A DNA stretch of 64,000 bases, taken from Dicyema japonicum (lineage: Eukaryota > Animalia > Dicyemida). The stretch covers positions 1,082,796 through 1,146,795 of the forward strand of contig RDEW01000010.1 in NCBI GenBank assembly GCA_011109175.1, in the 5' to 3' direction. A program made the position numbers and the translations under genes. The notes beneath the pieces are model-generated. The model did not search any database. It saw nothing but the letters and a program-made list of their open reading frames with translations, and was not told the DNA's origin. This document shows, in pieces, positions 1,395 to 9,912 of this stretch. Each line of letters starts with the position of its first letter. The first letter of the stretch is position 1.

Positions 1395-1520
1395 ATGCTT
1401 CGTGCCTTTCTTCGTTCATTTAGCGTCAAGGGATCCACCTGTCTCAGGAGGTGCCCAGTGGCAGGATAGGATCAGAAAGGATCATTTGCTCTCTCTAACT
1501 CTACTGGATTATTTCATGGA
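1395..1520 (+). repeat. Diverged copy B of SINE-like family
   Basis: gggatccacctgtctcaggaggtgcccagtggc...cagaaaggatcatttgctctctctaactctactgga, matching the core of copy E. Confidence 0.65.
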
Positions 1521-1799
1521 GAGCTTTCGACAACCGAGGTTTTTGAAGGACTAGCCACACTCAGAAGCCATGAGGTCCGTGGAAACCCAATGCTTTATCC
1601 AGGTGGGAGGCAACATCACATCAAGTCGGCAGGGATTAATTGAACTTAATGATAATTTTTACTAAATTATCATTTTGTAAAAATAATGAGATTTTTGATT
1701 AAAAATAGTCGAATTGATTCTATTGGTATGCAGAAAATCGACTTGAGAATAACAGTGCCAATCTTTACCGTAGCGTGGACTATACGAAATGGTTACATG

Positions 1800-2010
1800 T
1801 TCTGCTCTTTGCCTTCTTCGATTCCTTAGAGGCGTCCTAAGATTCATCTAACTTAGGAGACACTAATTGCCTGGTCGGCATCCGAAAATGGTCTTTCTTT
1901 TCCTATTCCAGTGGAGGGGTACGGTAAGGAGATGGGTGGACTTGATGTCTGAAAGGATGCCCCTCTTTCCGACCAAGGGAAGTGGATAAAACCTGTTTCA
2001 GGTATATCCG
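1800..2010 (+). repeat. Diverged copy C of SINE-like family
   Basis: ggcgtcc-taa-gattc-atc-taactta-gg-agacact-aat-tgcc-tggtc-ggca-tccgaaaa-tggtct; pyrimidine-rich leader ctctttgccttctt shared with copy A. Confidence 0.6.
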
Positions 2011-2589
2011 AGGTTTCATGTTAAATCCGTCCGACATAAAAAATTAAAGTTGGGAGAAGGATCCCTTAAGTTCCACTTACAACATTTTTAAATAACCCAA
2101 GTCCCACCTCTCTCATTTGAGGTACTTATGGCATTGTTCGGCAATCGCACTTGAAGGTCCCCACCCTCCTAATGGTTAGTGAGGTGGGTCTAACTAGCCA
2201 ACTAATGTCTCTGAAAATTGTAATTGTTCACTTCAGTGAGGACCTTGTACCATTCACTTGACCTATAATTGATCAGATTGTACAAGTTTTATTTTCCGGT
2301 TAATTAATTGATTTTTTTAAATAAAAGGAATTTTTCAGTCATTGATTTCCTTTCTCAATATATTTGCTATATTAATCACAAGGCCCATTAATTCTTGGCA
2401 CGCTTCTGCATGCTTCTTCACGACCCCCCATTTTTTGATGGTGCCTGCGATAGACATCAGAGAGGACTCTGGAAAATATCAAGGCCACCATATTAAAGTA
2501 TCCAGAGGAATAGGGAGACCCAAATAGTTATTTCCTATCTCTAAGCGACATAGGGGGTCACCACAGAAAGCATTCAGTCCTTACAGTTC

Positions 2590-2685
2590 TAGGAACTCAT
2601 CCAATGAAGTGGGACAGATCAAATGATCCTTTTCCGTACCATTCTGATACTAGGCGTCACCTAAGATAGCAAAACTCTAAGGATG
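2590..2685 (-). repeat. Partial copy D of SINE-like family
   Basis: Reverse complement reads ttaggtgacgcctagtatcagaatggtacggaaaaggatcatttg. Confidence 0.6.
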
Positions 2686-3849
2686 TTTTTCATCTCCCTG
2701 ATGGATCTAACATTTGAGGACCTTTTCAGAAAGTGGATCGAATCCCGAGAGCCTTGAATCAGCCAATGACCGCCCTTTTCCTTTATGGTGATTCTTGACT
2801 CTATCGCAAAAATGTCTACTTAGCTTTGTGATCATTAAAAGTCTTGTCTTTTTTCAGTCGGTCTGGAATAGCTGGGGGACTCATGAGACTTGGAAAACCA
2901 AAGCTCTTAGCAAAGTGATTTTCGGATGCGCGTAGGATCGAATCTCGTCCCTTTAAGATATTGTAATCATCCCACGATTCTACAAGTTTCGGTATCGCAA
3001 AAAATTAAAGGGAAATTATTATCATAATTTTAATACAAATTTACTTTAATCTTCCACGATTAAGTGCGCGTGTTCCGACAAAGTAAATTATCATTAAGAA
3101 CATTCGAGAATAGATAATTCCCAAATTTTCCCCAACGAGATTTGCCCAAGTTCCCCCAAATTTGGCAGGCTTGATTCGAACACAGACATAAGTGACATTA
3201 TCCTTCTTTATTTCAAAATTTTGGATTTCCGACATATACTGAGGACATTAAGAAAAAGAACGGGAGGTTGTATCCACCTTGATGAGATAAAGTGATTCAT
3301 TGAAATGGTTGGACGCGAAAGGAAGTGAGAAGCGAGACATGAAGCTTTCAAAACTTGGTTTGTAGTATTGGGGGTAACTCTCAGCAATTCCTAATTATTA
3401 TTTGTTTCCTTCCTTATTTTGATTGTACTAAAATTATTAATTTGAAAAATTTAATAGTGTTAGTTAGGTGCATCACCAGATACTAAAATTTTCTTATTAT
3501 TGGCAACATCCAAGTTTTCTCAATTTTTGAGTTATGAGATTTGAACTCGGATCCCACGTGTAGCTTACGCTTCCTGTGATCACATGACGCCATTATAGTA
3601 AAACAAAAAAAATAATGAACAGAGGGAATGAAGAGAAACTTCCGATCAAGTAATTAGGGATGGAACCAAAATTAACTATGAACTCCTAACCACTAAACTA
3701 CCTGGTCACTAGAACCTTAAAGCTCTTTTCTGCAGAAGAAACTTTTCTAAATTCATCATTTAAAATATTATTCCAAAATATTTTAAATTCAACAAAAAAT
3801 TACCAATAAATTATAATTATTTCAAAAGTCAGCTACAACATGACCAAGT

Positions 3850-5342: not shown

Positions 5343-6592
5343 ACTTGATAAAATTTATTTTCTATGATAAATTTATAACTCCAAAATAGAAGCTGAAATA
5401 CATTTAAATTAGTACGTTTAAGATAATAGACACGATTTCATATTTTCTTAGATATTTACGGTTATCTTCCACTATGGCTTGCTGGGATTTCGAAGGTACT
5501 TTAACCTAATCAGGGTTAGATTTCAGAAACATAAATAAATTTGTAATTTTAAATAACAACCATTGAACACACTGAAAAGGTACAACGAAAATTTTATTTT
5601 ATTTAAGTTTAAATAAAAAATTTATTTTAATATTTAATAAATTTAAATTTAATATAAAGTAATAAAATATATGATATTTAATTTTCTATGTAATTTTGAT
5701 TGAGTATTTATTGTTATTACAATAACTAAATTCTCTTCCTATTTTGCTAGATGGGACTCTAACCAAAATATCTGTGCATCCGATGCTTCTTTATTTTAAA
5801 CTTTTTTCTCATATCTCTTGAGTTTATTAGGCGAGAAGTTATACTTATCTTATGAAAGTAAAGACATCTTATGTACTTATTCTATGCCATAGAAGACGTT
5901 ATTAGCTCAGCCATCGACCAATTAAGCAATAGATTATAGGGTTAGCGAATTAAAGATATCGGATATATGACGGGTTTGTCTGTCAATTTCATCCTAGCGT
6001 TTAATCCAAACATGTTGAAGTTGAGAAAAGTGCACATCGGAAGAGTTTTAACAAGGACTTTTGTGACTTTCAATCGCAAATTTATCTAACGGCTCAACTT
6101 ATTCAACTCAACCAGCCGTTTATTTGGAAAGCAATTTACTGTTTGTGACTCATTTGAGCCGAACAGCTCTACTATTCAAAACTTTGATTTTAATAACCCA
6201 AGTCCATTGTGTCGTTGTCTTGAAATCAGTTGAAACCCCTTAGCAGTTTTCGCCCGGATTGATTTGAAAGCTATTATGTCGCGAGCGCTACTTGCAACTA
6301 TTGCGCTACTTGCAATATCGATTTTTTGAATTTTTTGAATTTTTTTTGAATCTATGAAAATTATTCTTTTGGATTAAAATTCTAATTTTTAGTAATATAA
6401 AATATTAATTTTAATGTATAAAATTAATATTTAAACTATTAATTCTAATTGTAAAATTGTTACTGTCACGCTTCTCCCACGTTGTTGTGGTGCTTCGTTT
6501 TGTGCTAATGCTTATTCCATATTATTTTGATTGTCTTATATTTTCTCATTAATATATTAGTGGATTCATCAAATAGAGTTTAATAGGTTTGC

Positions 6593-6868
6593 ATTTAGAC
6601 ATGATAAAGACATGAATTTCTTGAGAAGAAAAAACAGAAGCACGTCACCACTTCAACCAAAAAGACCAAGAAACACACTTCCAACCTGCTTAAAAGATGA
6701 CTACGAACAAAATAGTCGTAAATTGGTGACAGCGGACGATCTGGATGATGTTCGAATGAGGGCCAGGAACAAGATAGCGTGGGCGAGGAGGATGGCTGCA
6801 AATCATGGCTCAAGCGAACCCCTTTTAGGGCCACGCGAAAGAGCTCTTAACTGACTTAAATTAACTAT
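6593..6868 (+). mobile_element. 5'-truncated RTE LINE 3' fragment nested in the TIR element
   Basis: KRPRNTLPTCLKDD...DDLDDVRMRARNKIAW resembles an RTE C-terminus; 10-bp TSD ATAGGTTTGC at 6583-6592 and 6869-6878. Confidence 0.75.
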
Positions 6869-7045
6869 ATAGGTTTGCGTAAAAAAGACCATGGAACAAA
6901 TCCCTCGCTAAAGTTAGGGAAATTTGAGTTTCCCTACAGTGAAAAAGTGAAAGTCGTAGATATATTGTCTAACAAGCGAATGACACTTCAATCAAATGAG
7001 GGACATAGCGAGATCTTCCACATGAGTCGCGTTAAAAAGCTTTAA
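6869..7045 (+). pseudogene. Remnant of a Gypsy/Ginger-type integrase C-terminal (GPY/F-like) module
   Basis: 58 codons IGLRKKDHGTNPSLKLGKFEFPYSEKVKVVDILSNKRMTLQSNEGHSEIFHMSRVKKL*, resembling the GPYKVVEVLS...VFHVSRLK pattern. Confidence 0.5.
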
Positions 7046-7323
7046 AAAGAAGTGACTTACCTTTTCTTATAAATAAAATTTTTTTTTTTTGAATTTTTTG
7101 TCTTAATTGAAACTTAAATGAATACAATCGTATAACCCGGAATTTTTAATAGTTTAAAATATTGAAAAATTAAGAGTTTTATTGTTGAAATTAATTTTTA
7201 AATTATTTAGATGCTTATCAGTATTATTAATAGTAAGATAATTTAAGAATTTAAAAAATAAATTCAATTTTATATTTTTTAAAGCATAACATAAATCTAC
7301 ATATAATTTTAGTTTCATGTTTT

Positions 7324-8733
7324 TTGAGTAAAACTGGTTTCTTTAAAAAATTTCGACAATTGTCCAAAATTCAAGAGATAGATCCGGCATCTTTTATTCC
7401 GATAGAAGTACAAGATACAAGAAGTAGTTATAAAGAAAAGTCGAAATTGAGTGGTCCCTTGTGTCATCCTATAACGCTGGAAGAAATAAATGCTGCAATT
7501 AAGGGTTGCAAAAATAAAGCACCAGGGTGGGATTTTATCCCAATGAGTATTTTCAAGAACGCAGGCCCAATTTTGATTGAGTGCCTAAAAATATTATATA
7601 ATTCTTCTTGGAGTTTTGGTCATGTTCCAGCTTATTGGAAACGAACAATTGTACGCATGGTTGTGAAAAAAGGAAAGCCAAGGTCAAAAGCAGATAGTTA
7701 TAGGCCAATTAGCCTAGTCTGCTCAATATCGAAAGTTATGGAAAAAATTGTTTTCAATCGTCTATCAAGGCATGTTGAGGATAATAATTTTCTCTCTGAT
7801 AATCAACTGGGATTTCGGCATAAAAAAGGGACTGGAGATTGCTTTAAAGAGCTAAGATCTGCAATCGAAATTTCACGAAATAAAAAGGAATTTCTTACAA
7901 TAGCATGTTTGGATATAACAAAAGCGTTTGACAGTGTTTGGCACTTTGGACTTGTTGATACGTTGTCAAAAGCAGAAATTGGGAAAACTGCGTTATTATG
8001 GATAGAAAACTTTCTTTCAAAAAGAAAGTCATATATACGTGTTGGAAATTTAATTTCAAAGAAAATTGAATTGCGAAGAGGAGTTCCACAGGGTTCAATT
8101 CTCAGTCCGCTACTCTTCAATTGCGTAATGAGAGATTTGCCGAAAACAGAAAGCGTAAATAGTCAAATGATTATTTATGCTGATGACATTCTTGTGCTTG
8201 ATTCAAGCATGAATAAACAAATTTCATGGAAAAGAGTGGAATCCCATATTACTAAGATTGGAAAGTGGTGCCAAAACAATGGGTTGACTCTATCGAGGGA
8301 AAAAACAACAGTCACTTGGATTGCAAGTAAAAGAAAAAATATTAATCAATGTGTGAATACTGGGGATATAAAAATCTCTGAAACATTGAAGTATCTCGGA
8401 TTGTTGATAGACCGAAGAGGATCTTTCAAGGAACATATTAAAACACGAAGAAAGAAAGCTACAGGAATGTTGAAATCTTTAATTCGATTTCATTTGGAGC
8501 CTGAAACTTTTCTTTTTGTGTATTCGGCGTGTGTTGAACCATTCTTGATATATGGTTATCAAGGATGGTTTAGAACAAAAGAAAGTGATGTCTTTGTCAA
8601 AAAATTGGAAAAGTCCAGAAGATTTGCGATTAAATTGGCATATGGACTGGACTTAAAATCTAATATCGAAGAGGATTACGACCTGAAAGTCAGAAAGATA
8701 GAAAAATTATTACATCACTTATGGAAAATGTGA
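7324..8733 (+). CDS. Non-LTR (Jockey/I-like) reverse transcriptase, RT and thumb only
   Basis: Uninterrupted 469-aa ORF with KAPGWD, YRPISL, QLGFR, LDITKAFDSVWH, GVPQGSILSPLLF, YADD, KYLG; no endonuclease. An ATG at 7317 would be in frame if the T-run were one base shorter. Confidence 0.9.
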   Translation: MSKTGFFKKFRQLSKIQEIDPASFIPIEVQDTRSSYKEKSKLSGPLCHPITLEEINAAIKGCKNKAPGWDFIPMSIFKNAGPILIECLKILYNSSWSFGHVPAYWKRTIVRMVVKKGKPRSKADSYRPISLVCSISKVMEKIVFNRLSRHVEDNNFLSDNQLGFRHKKGTGDCFKELRSAIEISRNKKEFLTIACLDITKAFDSVWHFGLVDTLSKAEIGKTALLWIENFLSKRKSYIRVGNLISKKIELRRGVPQGSILSPLLFNCVMRDLPKTESVNSQMIIYADDILVLDSSMNKQISWKRVESHITKIGKWCQNNGLTLSREKTTVTWIASKRKNINQCVNTGDIKISETLKYLGLLIDRRGSFKEHIKTRRKKATGMLKSLIRFHLEPETFLFVYSACVEPFLIYGYQGWFRTKESDVFVKKLEKSRRFAIKLAYGLDLKSNIEEDYDLKVRKIEKLLHHLWKM

Positions 8734-9912
8734 TGTAATTTTTGGGGTCCAAACGAAGTAGAGACATGTGGTGTCTCATAAAATGACCCTACACGATGAA
8801 TACAAACCCACTTAATTAGTTTTGGTTCAGGTTTTGGTTTCTTTACAGTAATTAGTTTTGGGGTTTGTTAGAAAATAAAATTTGTCTTGTCTTGTCTTTA
8901 AAATGGTTCGATTTGTGAGTGTCTTAATACTACTCGTTTAATTTCGAGCAAAAAAAATCGATATTGCAAGTAGCGCATAGTTGCAAGTAGCGCTCGCGAC
9001 ATATTATGCTTCGAAACCACTATTTCTACGATCATACAACAATACCCATGTTGGATATAAAGCCGCAGTTTGTTACATAGTGTTTTCGAAAGGAATCTAT
9101 GATTTTATTTAAAACCTGGTGATCACTAGAAAAAAAGACAAAATATGGACAAACAGCTAGGTGATCCCAGTACCAACGCCATATTATGTCTGGGACATTG
9201 GGGAAAAGAACTTCTGACCGATTGCCTGGGACATAGATATGCAAGTGGGCTTCTGCCTTTTTCACAATATCGGAAGGAACCAGCTCGCATCTACATCTCG
9301 TAGTTTCCGTGAGTAGTAGTTTCCGTCACATCCAAAACGGGACTATTAGCTCCAAGGGTGGATAAAAGCCACGTAACTTACCTGACTCGAGCGGTTTCAG
9401 TGTAACAACTATTACCACGGAGGTCAGTACTTGCTAATTTGAATCACCAGGACAATGTCAATAGATCCCTAAGTCATCAGTTGTTCCAAAGACAAATTTT
9501 GAAGGATTCTCATTGTGGGTGGCAATTTGTCACCGACCCTTTTAGTAGGTACTTTACAATAAGAAAAATCACCGGTAACGTAAAAAAACAGTAAGATTCC
9601 CCGATAAACCCAATTTGGACAATTTCCTATTAACAGTTGTCATTTAAACTGCTATCGCAATAATAAGATTTCTCATGAAATGAGTCTCTTCAAGATACCA
9701 AAGAGAGGTGATAATGGACCAAATTCTGGAAAGCTCTGATTTAAATAACTCGATTTTTCAAACTGATTCTTGTTGGTCCTGATCATCTGAGTTGATTGGA
9801 AAGACGACAAGACATCTCTTTCCTCGGAGACATTTTTGACCTGTAGAATCCATATTTTAAATTATTATTAATTAAAAAAAATAATTATCTCTGAAAAAAA
9901 TTTAAATTTAAT

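Follow-up and report, generated by a model that had tools for sequence, protein, structure and literature searches.

An integrase-type transposon enclosing a LINE fragment in the dicyemid Dicyema japonicum: a probable nested insertion of two unrelated mobile elements

We analysed a 64,000-nucleotide stretch of the Dicyema japonicum genome (GenBank assembly GCA_011109175.1, contig RDEW01000010.1, positions 1,082,796 to 1,146,795 of the forward strand), called the window below. At 6277–9001 it carries a 2725-bp element bounded by terminal inverted repeats (TIRs), and inside this element lies a long open reading frame (ORF) for a reverse transcriptase (RT) of the long interspersed nuclear element (LINE) type. 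A first-pass annotation had read the locus as either an unusual mobile element combining an integrase with an RT, or a DNA transposon that captured an RT and kept it. Positions without a contig or locus label are window coordinates; C and L numbers are our labels for contigs and fetched loci. The genome that was searched with the element comprised 67,542,437 bases in 377 contigs. The published assembly is described as 67.5 Mb in 377 scaffolds, with 36.7% GC and 49% repeats (PMC6736024). The features of the locus, including the target-site duplication (TSD) and the untranslated regions (UTRs), are as follows.

6272–6276, no strand: left TSD copy TATTA; the empty-site contig joins 6271 to 9002
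6277–6327, plus strand: left TIR, TGTCGCGA plus two GCGCTACTTGCAA motifs; from inverted-repeat pairing and genome-wide terminus counts
6277–6473, plus strand: left arm, homologous to nt 1–189 of the ~2-kb integrase-encoding member in L040; 92% identity
6474–6855, no strand: filler replacing nt 190–1395 of the L040 element (N-terminus and catalytic core of the integrase); no homology to the L040 element
6856–7357, plus strand: 3' region, with the integrase last-exon remnant and then the 3' UTR as far as the junction with the LINE; 94% identity to nt 1396–1896 of the L040 element
7341–7357, plus strand: left copy of the LINE target sequence, CTTTAAAAAATTTCGAC; its last 5 nt, TCGAC, are the microhomology
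7353–8898, plus strand: 5'-truncated LINE copy, nt 1501–3046 of the L004 reference stretch; 99.7% identity to L003–L005
within 7353–8898, plus strand: remainder of LINE ORF2 with the RT, stop at 8733; 3' UTR 8734–8881; (TTGTC)3 tail 8882–8898
8896–8912, plus strand: right copy of the LINE target sequence, CTTTAAAATGGTTCGAT; 4 differences from the left copy
8899–9001, plus strand: right end of the Ginger-like element; 100% identity to C13:920895-920996
8952–9001, plus strand: right TIR; from inverted-repeat pairing
9002–9006, no strand: right TSD copy TATTA; from the 5-mer match and the empty-site contig

The TIRs measure 51 and 50 nt with one 1-nt indel, and each holds two GCGCTACTTGCAA motifs. 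The termini of the element read TGTCG...CGACA. The repeats of about 50 bp, the doubled motif and the TGT...ACA ends noticed in the first-pass annotation are thus present, at 6277–6327 and 8952–9001. A genome-wide count gave 86 occurrences of the 22-nt terminus (about 43 pairs' worth) and 0 of the reversed control. The TIR element therefore belongs to a genuine repeat family with about 40 members. Matching 5-mer TSDs were found at 10 other family copies, or 11 counting the copy in the window. The 5-mers seen in the family are TATTA (6 copies), TAATA (2 loci), GTATA and TACTT, and all of them are AT-rich.

Public contigs were placed on window 5900–9400; none of the runs that contain this stretch is recorded as RNA. 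It turned out that a 1023-nt contig of run X1, probably the sample from which the assembly was made, joins 6271 directly to 9002 and carries a single TATTA. The 2730 bp that it skips correspond to the 2725-bp composite plus one TATTA. This empty-site contig confirms the element boundaries and the 5-bp TSD and shows that the insertion is recent. Since the 5-mers GTATA and TACTT also occur and the empty site skips 2725 + 5 bp, the TSD is truly 5 bp long. The TATTA duplication named in the first-pass annotation is therefore supported by the 5-mers of ten other copies as well as by the empty allele. The whole composite is a recent insertion, polymorphic for presence and absence in the sequenced population.

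The window copy retains nt 1–189 and 1396–1984 of the L040 element, with about 380 bp of filler between them. Because this filler replaces the N-terminus and the core of the integrase, the window element is non-autonomous. The integrase last-exon remnant, at about 6865–7045, corresponds to an SH3-like C-terminus, and its frame is upset by the loss of 1 nt in an A run. The remnant had been recognized correctly in the first-pass annotation: 6856–7357 aligns at 94% with the 3' part of family members that encode an H2C2 zinc finger and an rve core. Pfam detected nothing significant in the small ORFs 6612–6854 and 6875–7045. Within the filler, a stretch of about 200 bp (~6663–6859) has 92–97% matches at many loci outside the TIR family. 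Public contigs of other copies of this repeat run on upstream with ...CGGAAGTCGCGGATTTCGAGGC; the stretch was probably part of another, short retroposon.

Longer members of the family encode the integrase. Pfam rve matches lie inside TIR pairs at C13:1300355-1302338 and on C201, C345, C312 and C356, and the integrase of these longer members scores 1.3e-11 for rve and 8.5e-5 for Integrase_H2C2. The L040 copy (L040:106-2089, 1984 bp) encodes an H2C2 zinc finger, the rve core and an SH3-like C-terminus. Its integrase gene is interrupted by at least four GT..AG introns of 25–27 nt each, in agreement with the ultra-short intron style of the host genome. The C-terminal exon, ...KLGKFEFPYSEKVKVVDI...IFHMSRVKK, looks GPY/F-like, and no Pfam model matched it. 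An ESM Atlas search with the integrase core returned generic rve clusters only. The integrase-encoding elements of about 2 kb leave no room for an RT, and the largest three TIR pairs in the genome span 5.4–7.4 kb. By these features, the family fits a Ginger2/TDD-like group. The first-pass assignment to the integrase-driven Ginger/TDD type agrees with the TGTNR ends, the 5-bp AT-rich TSD and the H2C2 + rve relatives. The family also has three derivatives of about 0.67 kb that resemble miniature inverted-repeat transposable elements, on C24 at 898160–898835, 902209–902880 and 906252–906888 (L046–L048). All three share the same flanks and TAATA TSDs, at intervals of about 4.05 kb; evidently, a single insertion was amplified within a larger tandem repeat.

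The RT segment has a different origin. When the genome was searched with the whole element, 7353–8898 recurred at at least 40 places with 97–100% identity. These copies share a common 3' end in (TTGTC)n and have at least 15 different 5' truncation points. The anatomy of the LINE, like that of the large elements, was drawn from 70 fetched loci. About 20 fetched copies extend upstream of the point that corresponds to window 7353, in shared LINE sequence, and their 3' flanks are unrelated. In L004, the ORF2 of 898 amino acids contains the Pfam domains Exo_endo_phos (PF03372, 1.1e-6), Exo_endo_phos_2 (PF14529, 7.1e-11) and RVT_1 (PF00078, 6.7e-39), that is, an apurinic endonuclease-type (APE) domain and an RT. 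Longer copies have an overlapping ORF upstream of ORF2. The LINE reaches at least 0.7 kb further 5', and its total length is at least 3.76 kb. Among PDB structures, its RT resembles L1 ORF2p and R2; the best non-self database relatives show only 22–31% identity and are unnamed.

The 469-codon frame at 7324–8733 matches RVT_1 at 2.1e-39 and contains no endonuclease domain according to Pfam, as the first-pass annotation had stated. To call it an intact gene was an overstatement. The frame opens with TTG at 7324, in the DNA of the host transposon, its first ATG is codon 74, and it covers only about residues 430–898 of the 898-residue ORF2. ORF1, the APE domain and the N-terminus of ORF2 are absent from the window copy. 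Judging from sequence, 7353–8898 is an ordinary young multi-copy APE + RT LINE that has been truncated. Its RT frame is open because the copy is young (99.7% identity) and does not testify to selection within the TIR element. Truncated copies elsewhere have their own TSDs: AATAATAA (L024), CTAAAATAAAT (L026) and AAAAAATTTC (C42). No strict target motif is common to the site in the Ginger-like element and the other LINE sites beyond an A-rich TSD start.

Several arrangements around other LINE copies were also recorded. At five loci (L004:3047-3650, L011, L021, L023 and L025) the LINE tail is followed directly by a common sequence "B" (GGATTTGCTATAAAGTAACCTTATATCTCGG...), and at L007 and L016 directly by a common sequence "D". 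These arrangements may be tandem pile-ups or template jumps. "B" might also be the 5' end of the LINE itself, in tandem arrays, but it does not overlap the 1.5 kb that precede ORF2. On a contig labelled Octopus sinensis (GCA_006345805.1, VCDQ01001570.1:219581-249021; L071) there is a nearly full-length relative of the LINE, with 86% nucleotide and 79% amino-acid identity. Two more repeat families shared with the Dicyema genome, at 75–90%, lie on that contig. Horizontal transfer of the LINE to the octopus was considered, but with two extra dicyemid-type repeats on the contig, contamination by another dicyemid is the simpler explanation. The octopus-labelled contig is likely to be such contamination, and transposon transfer is less likely.

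The junctions of the LINE lie within the Ginger-like element. In family copies without an insertion the site reads ...AACTGGTTTCTTTAAAA(ATGG/AAAT)TTCGACTTGTGAG..., and the candidate target-site sequence of the LINE, TTT/AAAA with conserved flanks, is ACTGGTTTCTTTAAAATGGTTCGACTTGTGAG. In the window, the left junction is ...TTTAAAAAATT-TCGAC-AATTG, where TCGAC is common to host and LINE, and the right junction is (TTGTC)3-TTTAAAATGGTTCGATTTGTGAG. The target duplication can be taken as a perfect TTTAAAA (7 bp) or as about 16 bp with 4 mismatches. It had been claimed that the RT segment has no clear poly(A) tail or TSD of its own; in fact it ends in the (TTGTC)3 tail at 8882–8898 and is flanked by target copies at 7341–7357 and 8896–8912. 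The left target copy matches an L033-type allele of the family, and the right copy an L043-type allele. We also considered the L033-type allele, TTTAAAAAATTTCGAC, as the scar of a lost LINE like that of the window. This was rejected, since the integrase-encoding L040 has the homologous ...CCGATTTCGAC.

To find family members, we used the left 1076 bp and the right 103 bp as separate queries, together with a pattern anchored beside the LINE site. At least 16 TIR-family copies read through the site uninterrupted and carry no RT. One of them, the LINE-free C364:61235-62397 (1163 bp), aligns to window 6277–7357 plus 8895–9001. The LINE landed (window 7348/8899) about 105 bp in from the right end of the Ginger-like element, and of the 38 family copies in the genome, 22 are occupied at this landing site. 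The occupants are 6 LINE tails, 5 X-type tails, 5 Y-type tails and 6 other sequences. Recognisable tails account for at least 16 of the 22, all of them in the same orientation. Since the TIR family amounts to well under 0.1% of the genome, this occupancy goes beyond chance. Of the 40 LINE copies that were scored, only about 7 lie at the Ginger site; the flanks of the remainder are unrelated and mostly A-rich. Besides the element in the window, the following LINE-bearing composites were found.

C101:490387-494281
C42:40454-43971
C310:383635-385279
C324:35916-39276
C312:617500-619469
C57:128734-132419

At least seven independent LINE events fall within about 5 bp at the landing site. In L004 reference coordinates, the enclosed LINE pieces start at 266, 508, 844, 1213, 1501, 1946 and 2961, and their identity ranges from 97.3 to 99.7%. 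On C42 the LINE has a perfect 10-bp TSD, AAAAAATTTC, and it adjoins a second retroelement, X, with a short target repeat of its own. The different starts, identities and host alleles, together with the C42 TSD, indicate that the composites are independent insertions. The retroelement X (L032:264-1500, on C42) measures about 1.24 kb; some 380 bp are duplicated in tandem within it, and its 3' end resembles the LINE 3' UTR. It very often stands head-to-tail with LINE copies and was also seen at L024, L044, L003, L009, L010, L014 and L020. The stretches C310:382135-386779 (L002) and C328:40673-45311 (L018) contain the same composite with its flanks, at 98.6% over 3.5 kb, and may be either a segmental duplication or uncollapsed haplotypes.

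These results suggest with a probability of about 93% that 6277–9001 consists of two unrelated mobile elements, a truncated LINE nested in a non-autonomous Ginger2/TDD-like transposon. Three observations weigh against it. No contig covering 5900–9400 shows an allele in which the TIR element lacks the LINE. Between the two target copies, 4 of about 16 positions are mismatched, which simple young target-primed reverse transcription does not predict; the mismatch may have come from ectopic conversion between LINE-bearing copies or from gap repair after excision. Other TIR pairs (on C101, C42, C310/C328, C324, C312 and C57) enclose the same LINE with the same 3' junction. The last point, with the constant orientation, is what a genuine hybrid would show, a mobile element whose life cycle needs both integrase and RT, with the RT as a constituent gene. 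However, the enclosed pieces begin at seven different positions, sit in different family alleles and vary in identity over the range given above, and the LINE on C42 has a perfect TSD of its own. The LINE is missing from at least 16 copies and is dispensable for those that encode the integrase, and at unrelated loci it stands as an autonomous APE-RT element. We therefore consider the probability of such a hybrid to be negligible. The first-pass annotation had asked whether other TIR pairs enclose the same RT and a full integrase: several enclose the RT, as independent LINE pieces, and the integrase-encoding copies of about 2 kb leave no room for one. Neither the hybrid nor an RT that was captured and kept agrees with the RT-free copies and with an RT that elsewhere belongs to an ordinary ORF1 + APE-RT LINE. 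The simple nested insertion that the first-pass annotation had set against its own reading is what the data indicate, with RT-free TIR copies in the genome and with the LINE junctions, tail and target duplication all inside the element.

The order of events can be graded as well. It is fairly probable that the LINE hit the element in situ at this locus. An arrival of the composite ready-made, formed elsewhere and moved as one unit by the family integrase with the LINE fragment as a passive passenger, would be a capture in a weak sense, and we find it rather unlikely. It would explain why the empty allele lacks the whole 2725-bp composite and one TATTA, with no intermediate allele seen. The Y-type composites with the same junction at C90, C124 and C335 hint that composites can be copied, and the mismatched LINE flanks point to more than one family copy in the history of the locus, for example through gap repair after excision. 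On the other hand, the LINE/host 5' junction of the window occurs only once in the genome, the contigs at the locus are short and cannot show rare alleles, and the same data are explained if a LINE recently entered a newly inserted Ginger element at a proven hot spot. Still more doubtful is a single ancestral LINE-in-Ginger insertion whose composite spread and was diversified by internal deletions, with no hot spot at all. As such an ancestor would require, all copies have one orientation, and their 3' junctions differ by no more than a few bp. Its right-hand flanks, however, would not be expected to match different empty-site alleles (TAAAATGG, TAAAAAATT, TACTGAG and CCGATT), nor its junction offsets to vary by 1–5 bp. 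C42 records two successive events, each with its own TSD, the LINE ages differ among composites, and unrelated X-type and Y-type tails occupy the same site. This single-ancestor history is very improbable.

Under the preferred reading of a nested insertion, the outer element would have been moved in trans by the H2C2 + DDE integrase of its relatives of about 2 kb, as family membership suggests. The family would insert at sites of the TATTA/TAATA type with a 5-bp TSD. The LINE was most likely inserted by target-primed reverse transcription at the T/A-rich landing site, some 105 bp from the right end, and its 5' end would have been joined via the 5-nt TCGAC microhomology. The inner copy, with no proper start codon, was dead on arrival and has no role in the movement of the TIR element. 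The landing site may in addition be an actively targeted pad for several non-LTR (long terminal repeat) families, all entering in one orientation, a kind of safe haven as with Tx1L in Tx1D, from which composites are then moved by integrase or gap repair; this is a tentative view, to which we give somewhat less than an even chance.

The claim of a new class of mobile element should thus be dropped in favour of a routine nested insertion. Recurrent insertions at a hot spot can mimic the presence of the same RT in many TIR pairs. The hot spot itself offers a tractable case for studying how an APE-type LINE chooses its target beyond a short nick-site consensus. If the view of an actively targeted pad is true, a DNA transposon could ferry LINE fragments in a mesozoan. 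The report on the D. japonicum genome mentions many LINE ORF2 copies and contains no transposon analysis (PMC6736024), and a literature search found no paper describing dicyemid Ginger-like or LINE families. As far as that search shows, an apparently active family of the Ginger2/TDD-like kind, with 5-bp TSDs, is described here for the first time from a dicyemid.

Known systems resemble both components. Ginger2/TDD elements have TIRs of about 50–180 bp and TGTNR...YNACA termini like those of Gypsy LTRs, and their transposase combines an H2C2 zinc finger with a DDE (rve) core and carries neither an RT nor an RNase H (Bao, Kapitonov and Jurka 2010, PMC2836005). Their target preference is AT-rich, RTATAY, and the TSD is 4 bp in metazoan Ginger2 families and 5 bp in Dictyostelium TDD-4 and TDD-5 (PMC2836005). 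The dicyemid family is similar in TIR length, TGTNR ends and an H2C2 + DDE integrase without an RT, and the short TSDs seen in it are AT-rich. Its 5-bp TSD is that of TDD-4/TDD-5 and differs from the 4 bp of the metazoan Ginger2 families of that study. Ginger2 is said to lack GPY/F, whereas the C-terminal exon of the dicyemid integrase looks like an SH3 module of the GPY/F type. The window copy also departs from the type as a deleted, non-autonomous derivative without H2C2 and rve. The dicyemid LINE copies are like dead-on-arrival L1-like copies in their variable 5' truncation, common 3' end with a family tail, microhomology at the 5' junction and short duplications at A-rich targets. Unlike those, the tail is (TTGTC)n and not poly(A), and the two target copies in the window differ. 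For the landing site, the closest precedent appears to be the Tx1L LINE in the Tx1D DNA transposon of Xenopus laevis, described as highly site-specific (Garrett et al. 1989, as cited in PMC1950540). As far as that citing account goes, in both cases an APE-type LINE enters a TIR transposon family repeatedly, at one site and in one orientation, and the resulting composites look like RT-carrying transposons. In contrast to Tx1L as portrayed there, most of the scored dicyemid LINE copies are found elsewhere, and the Ginger site is used by several retroelement tails.

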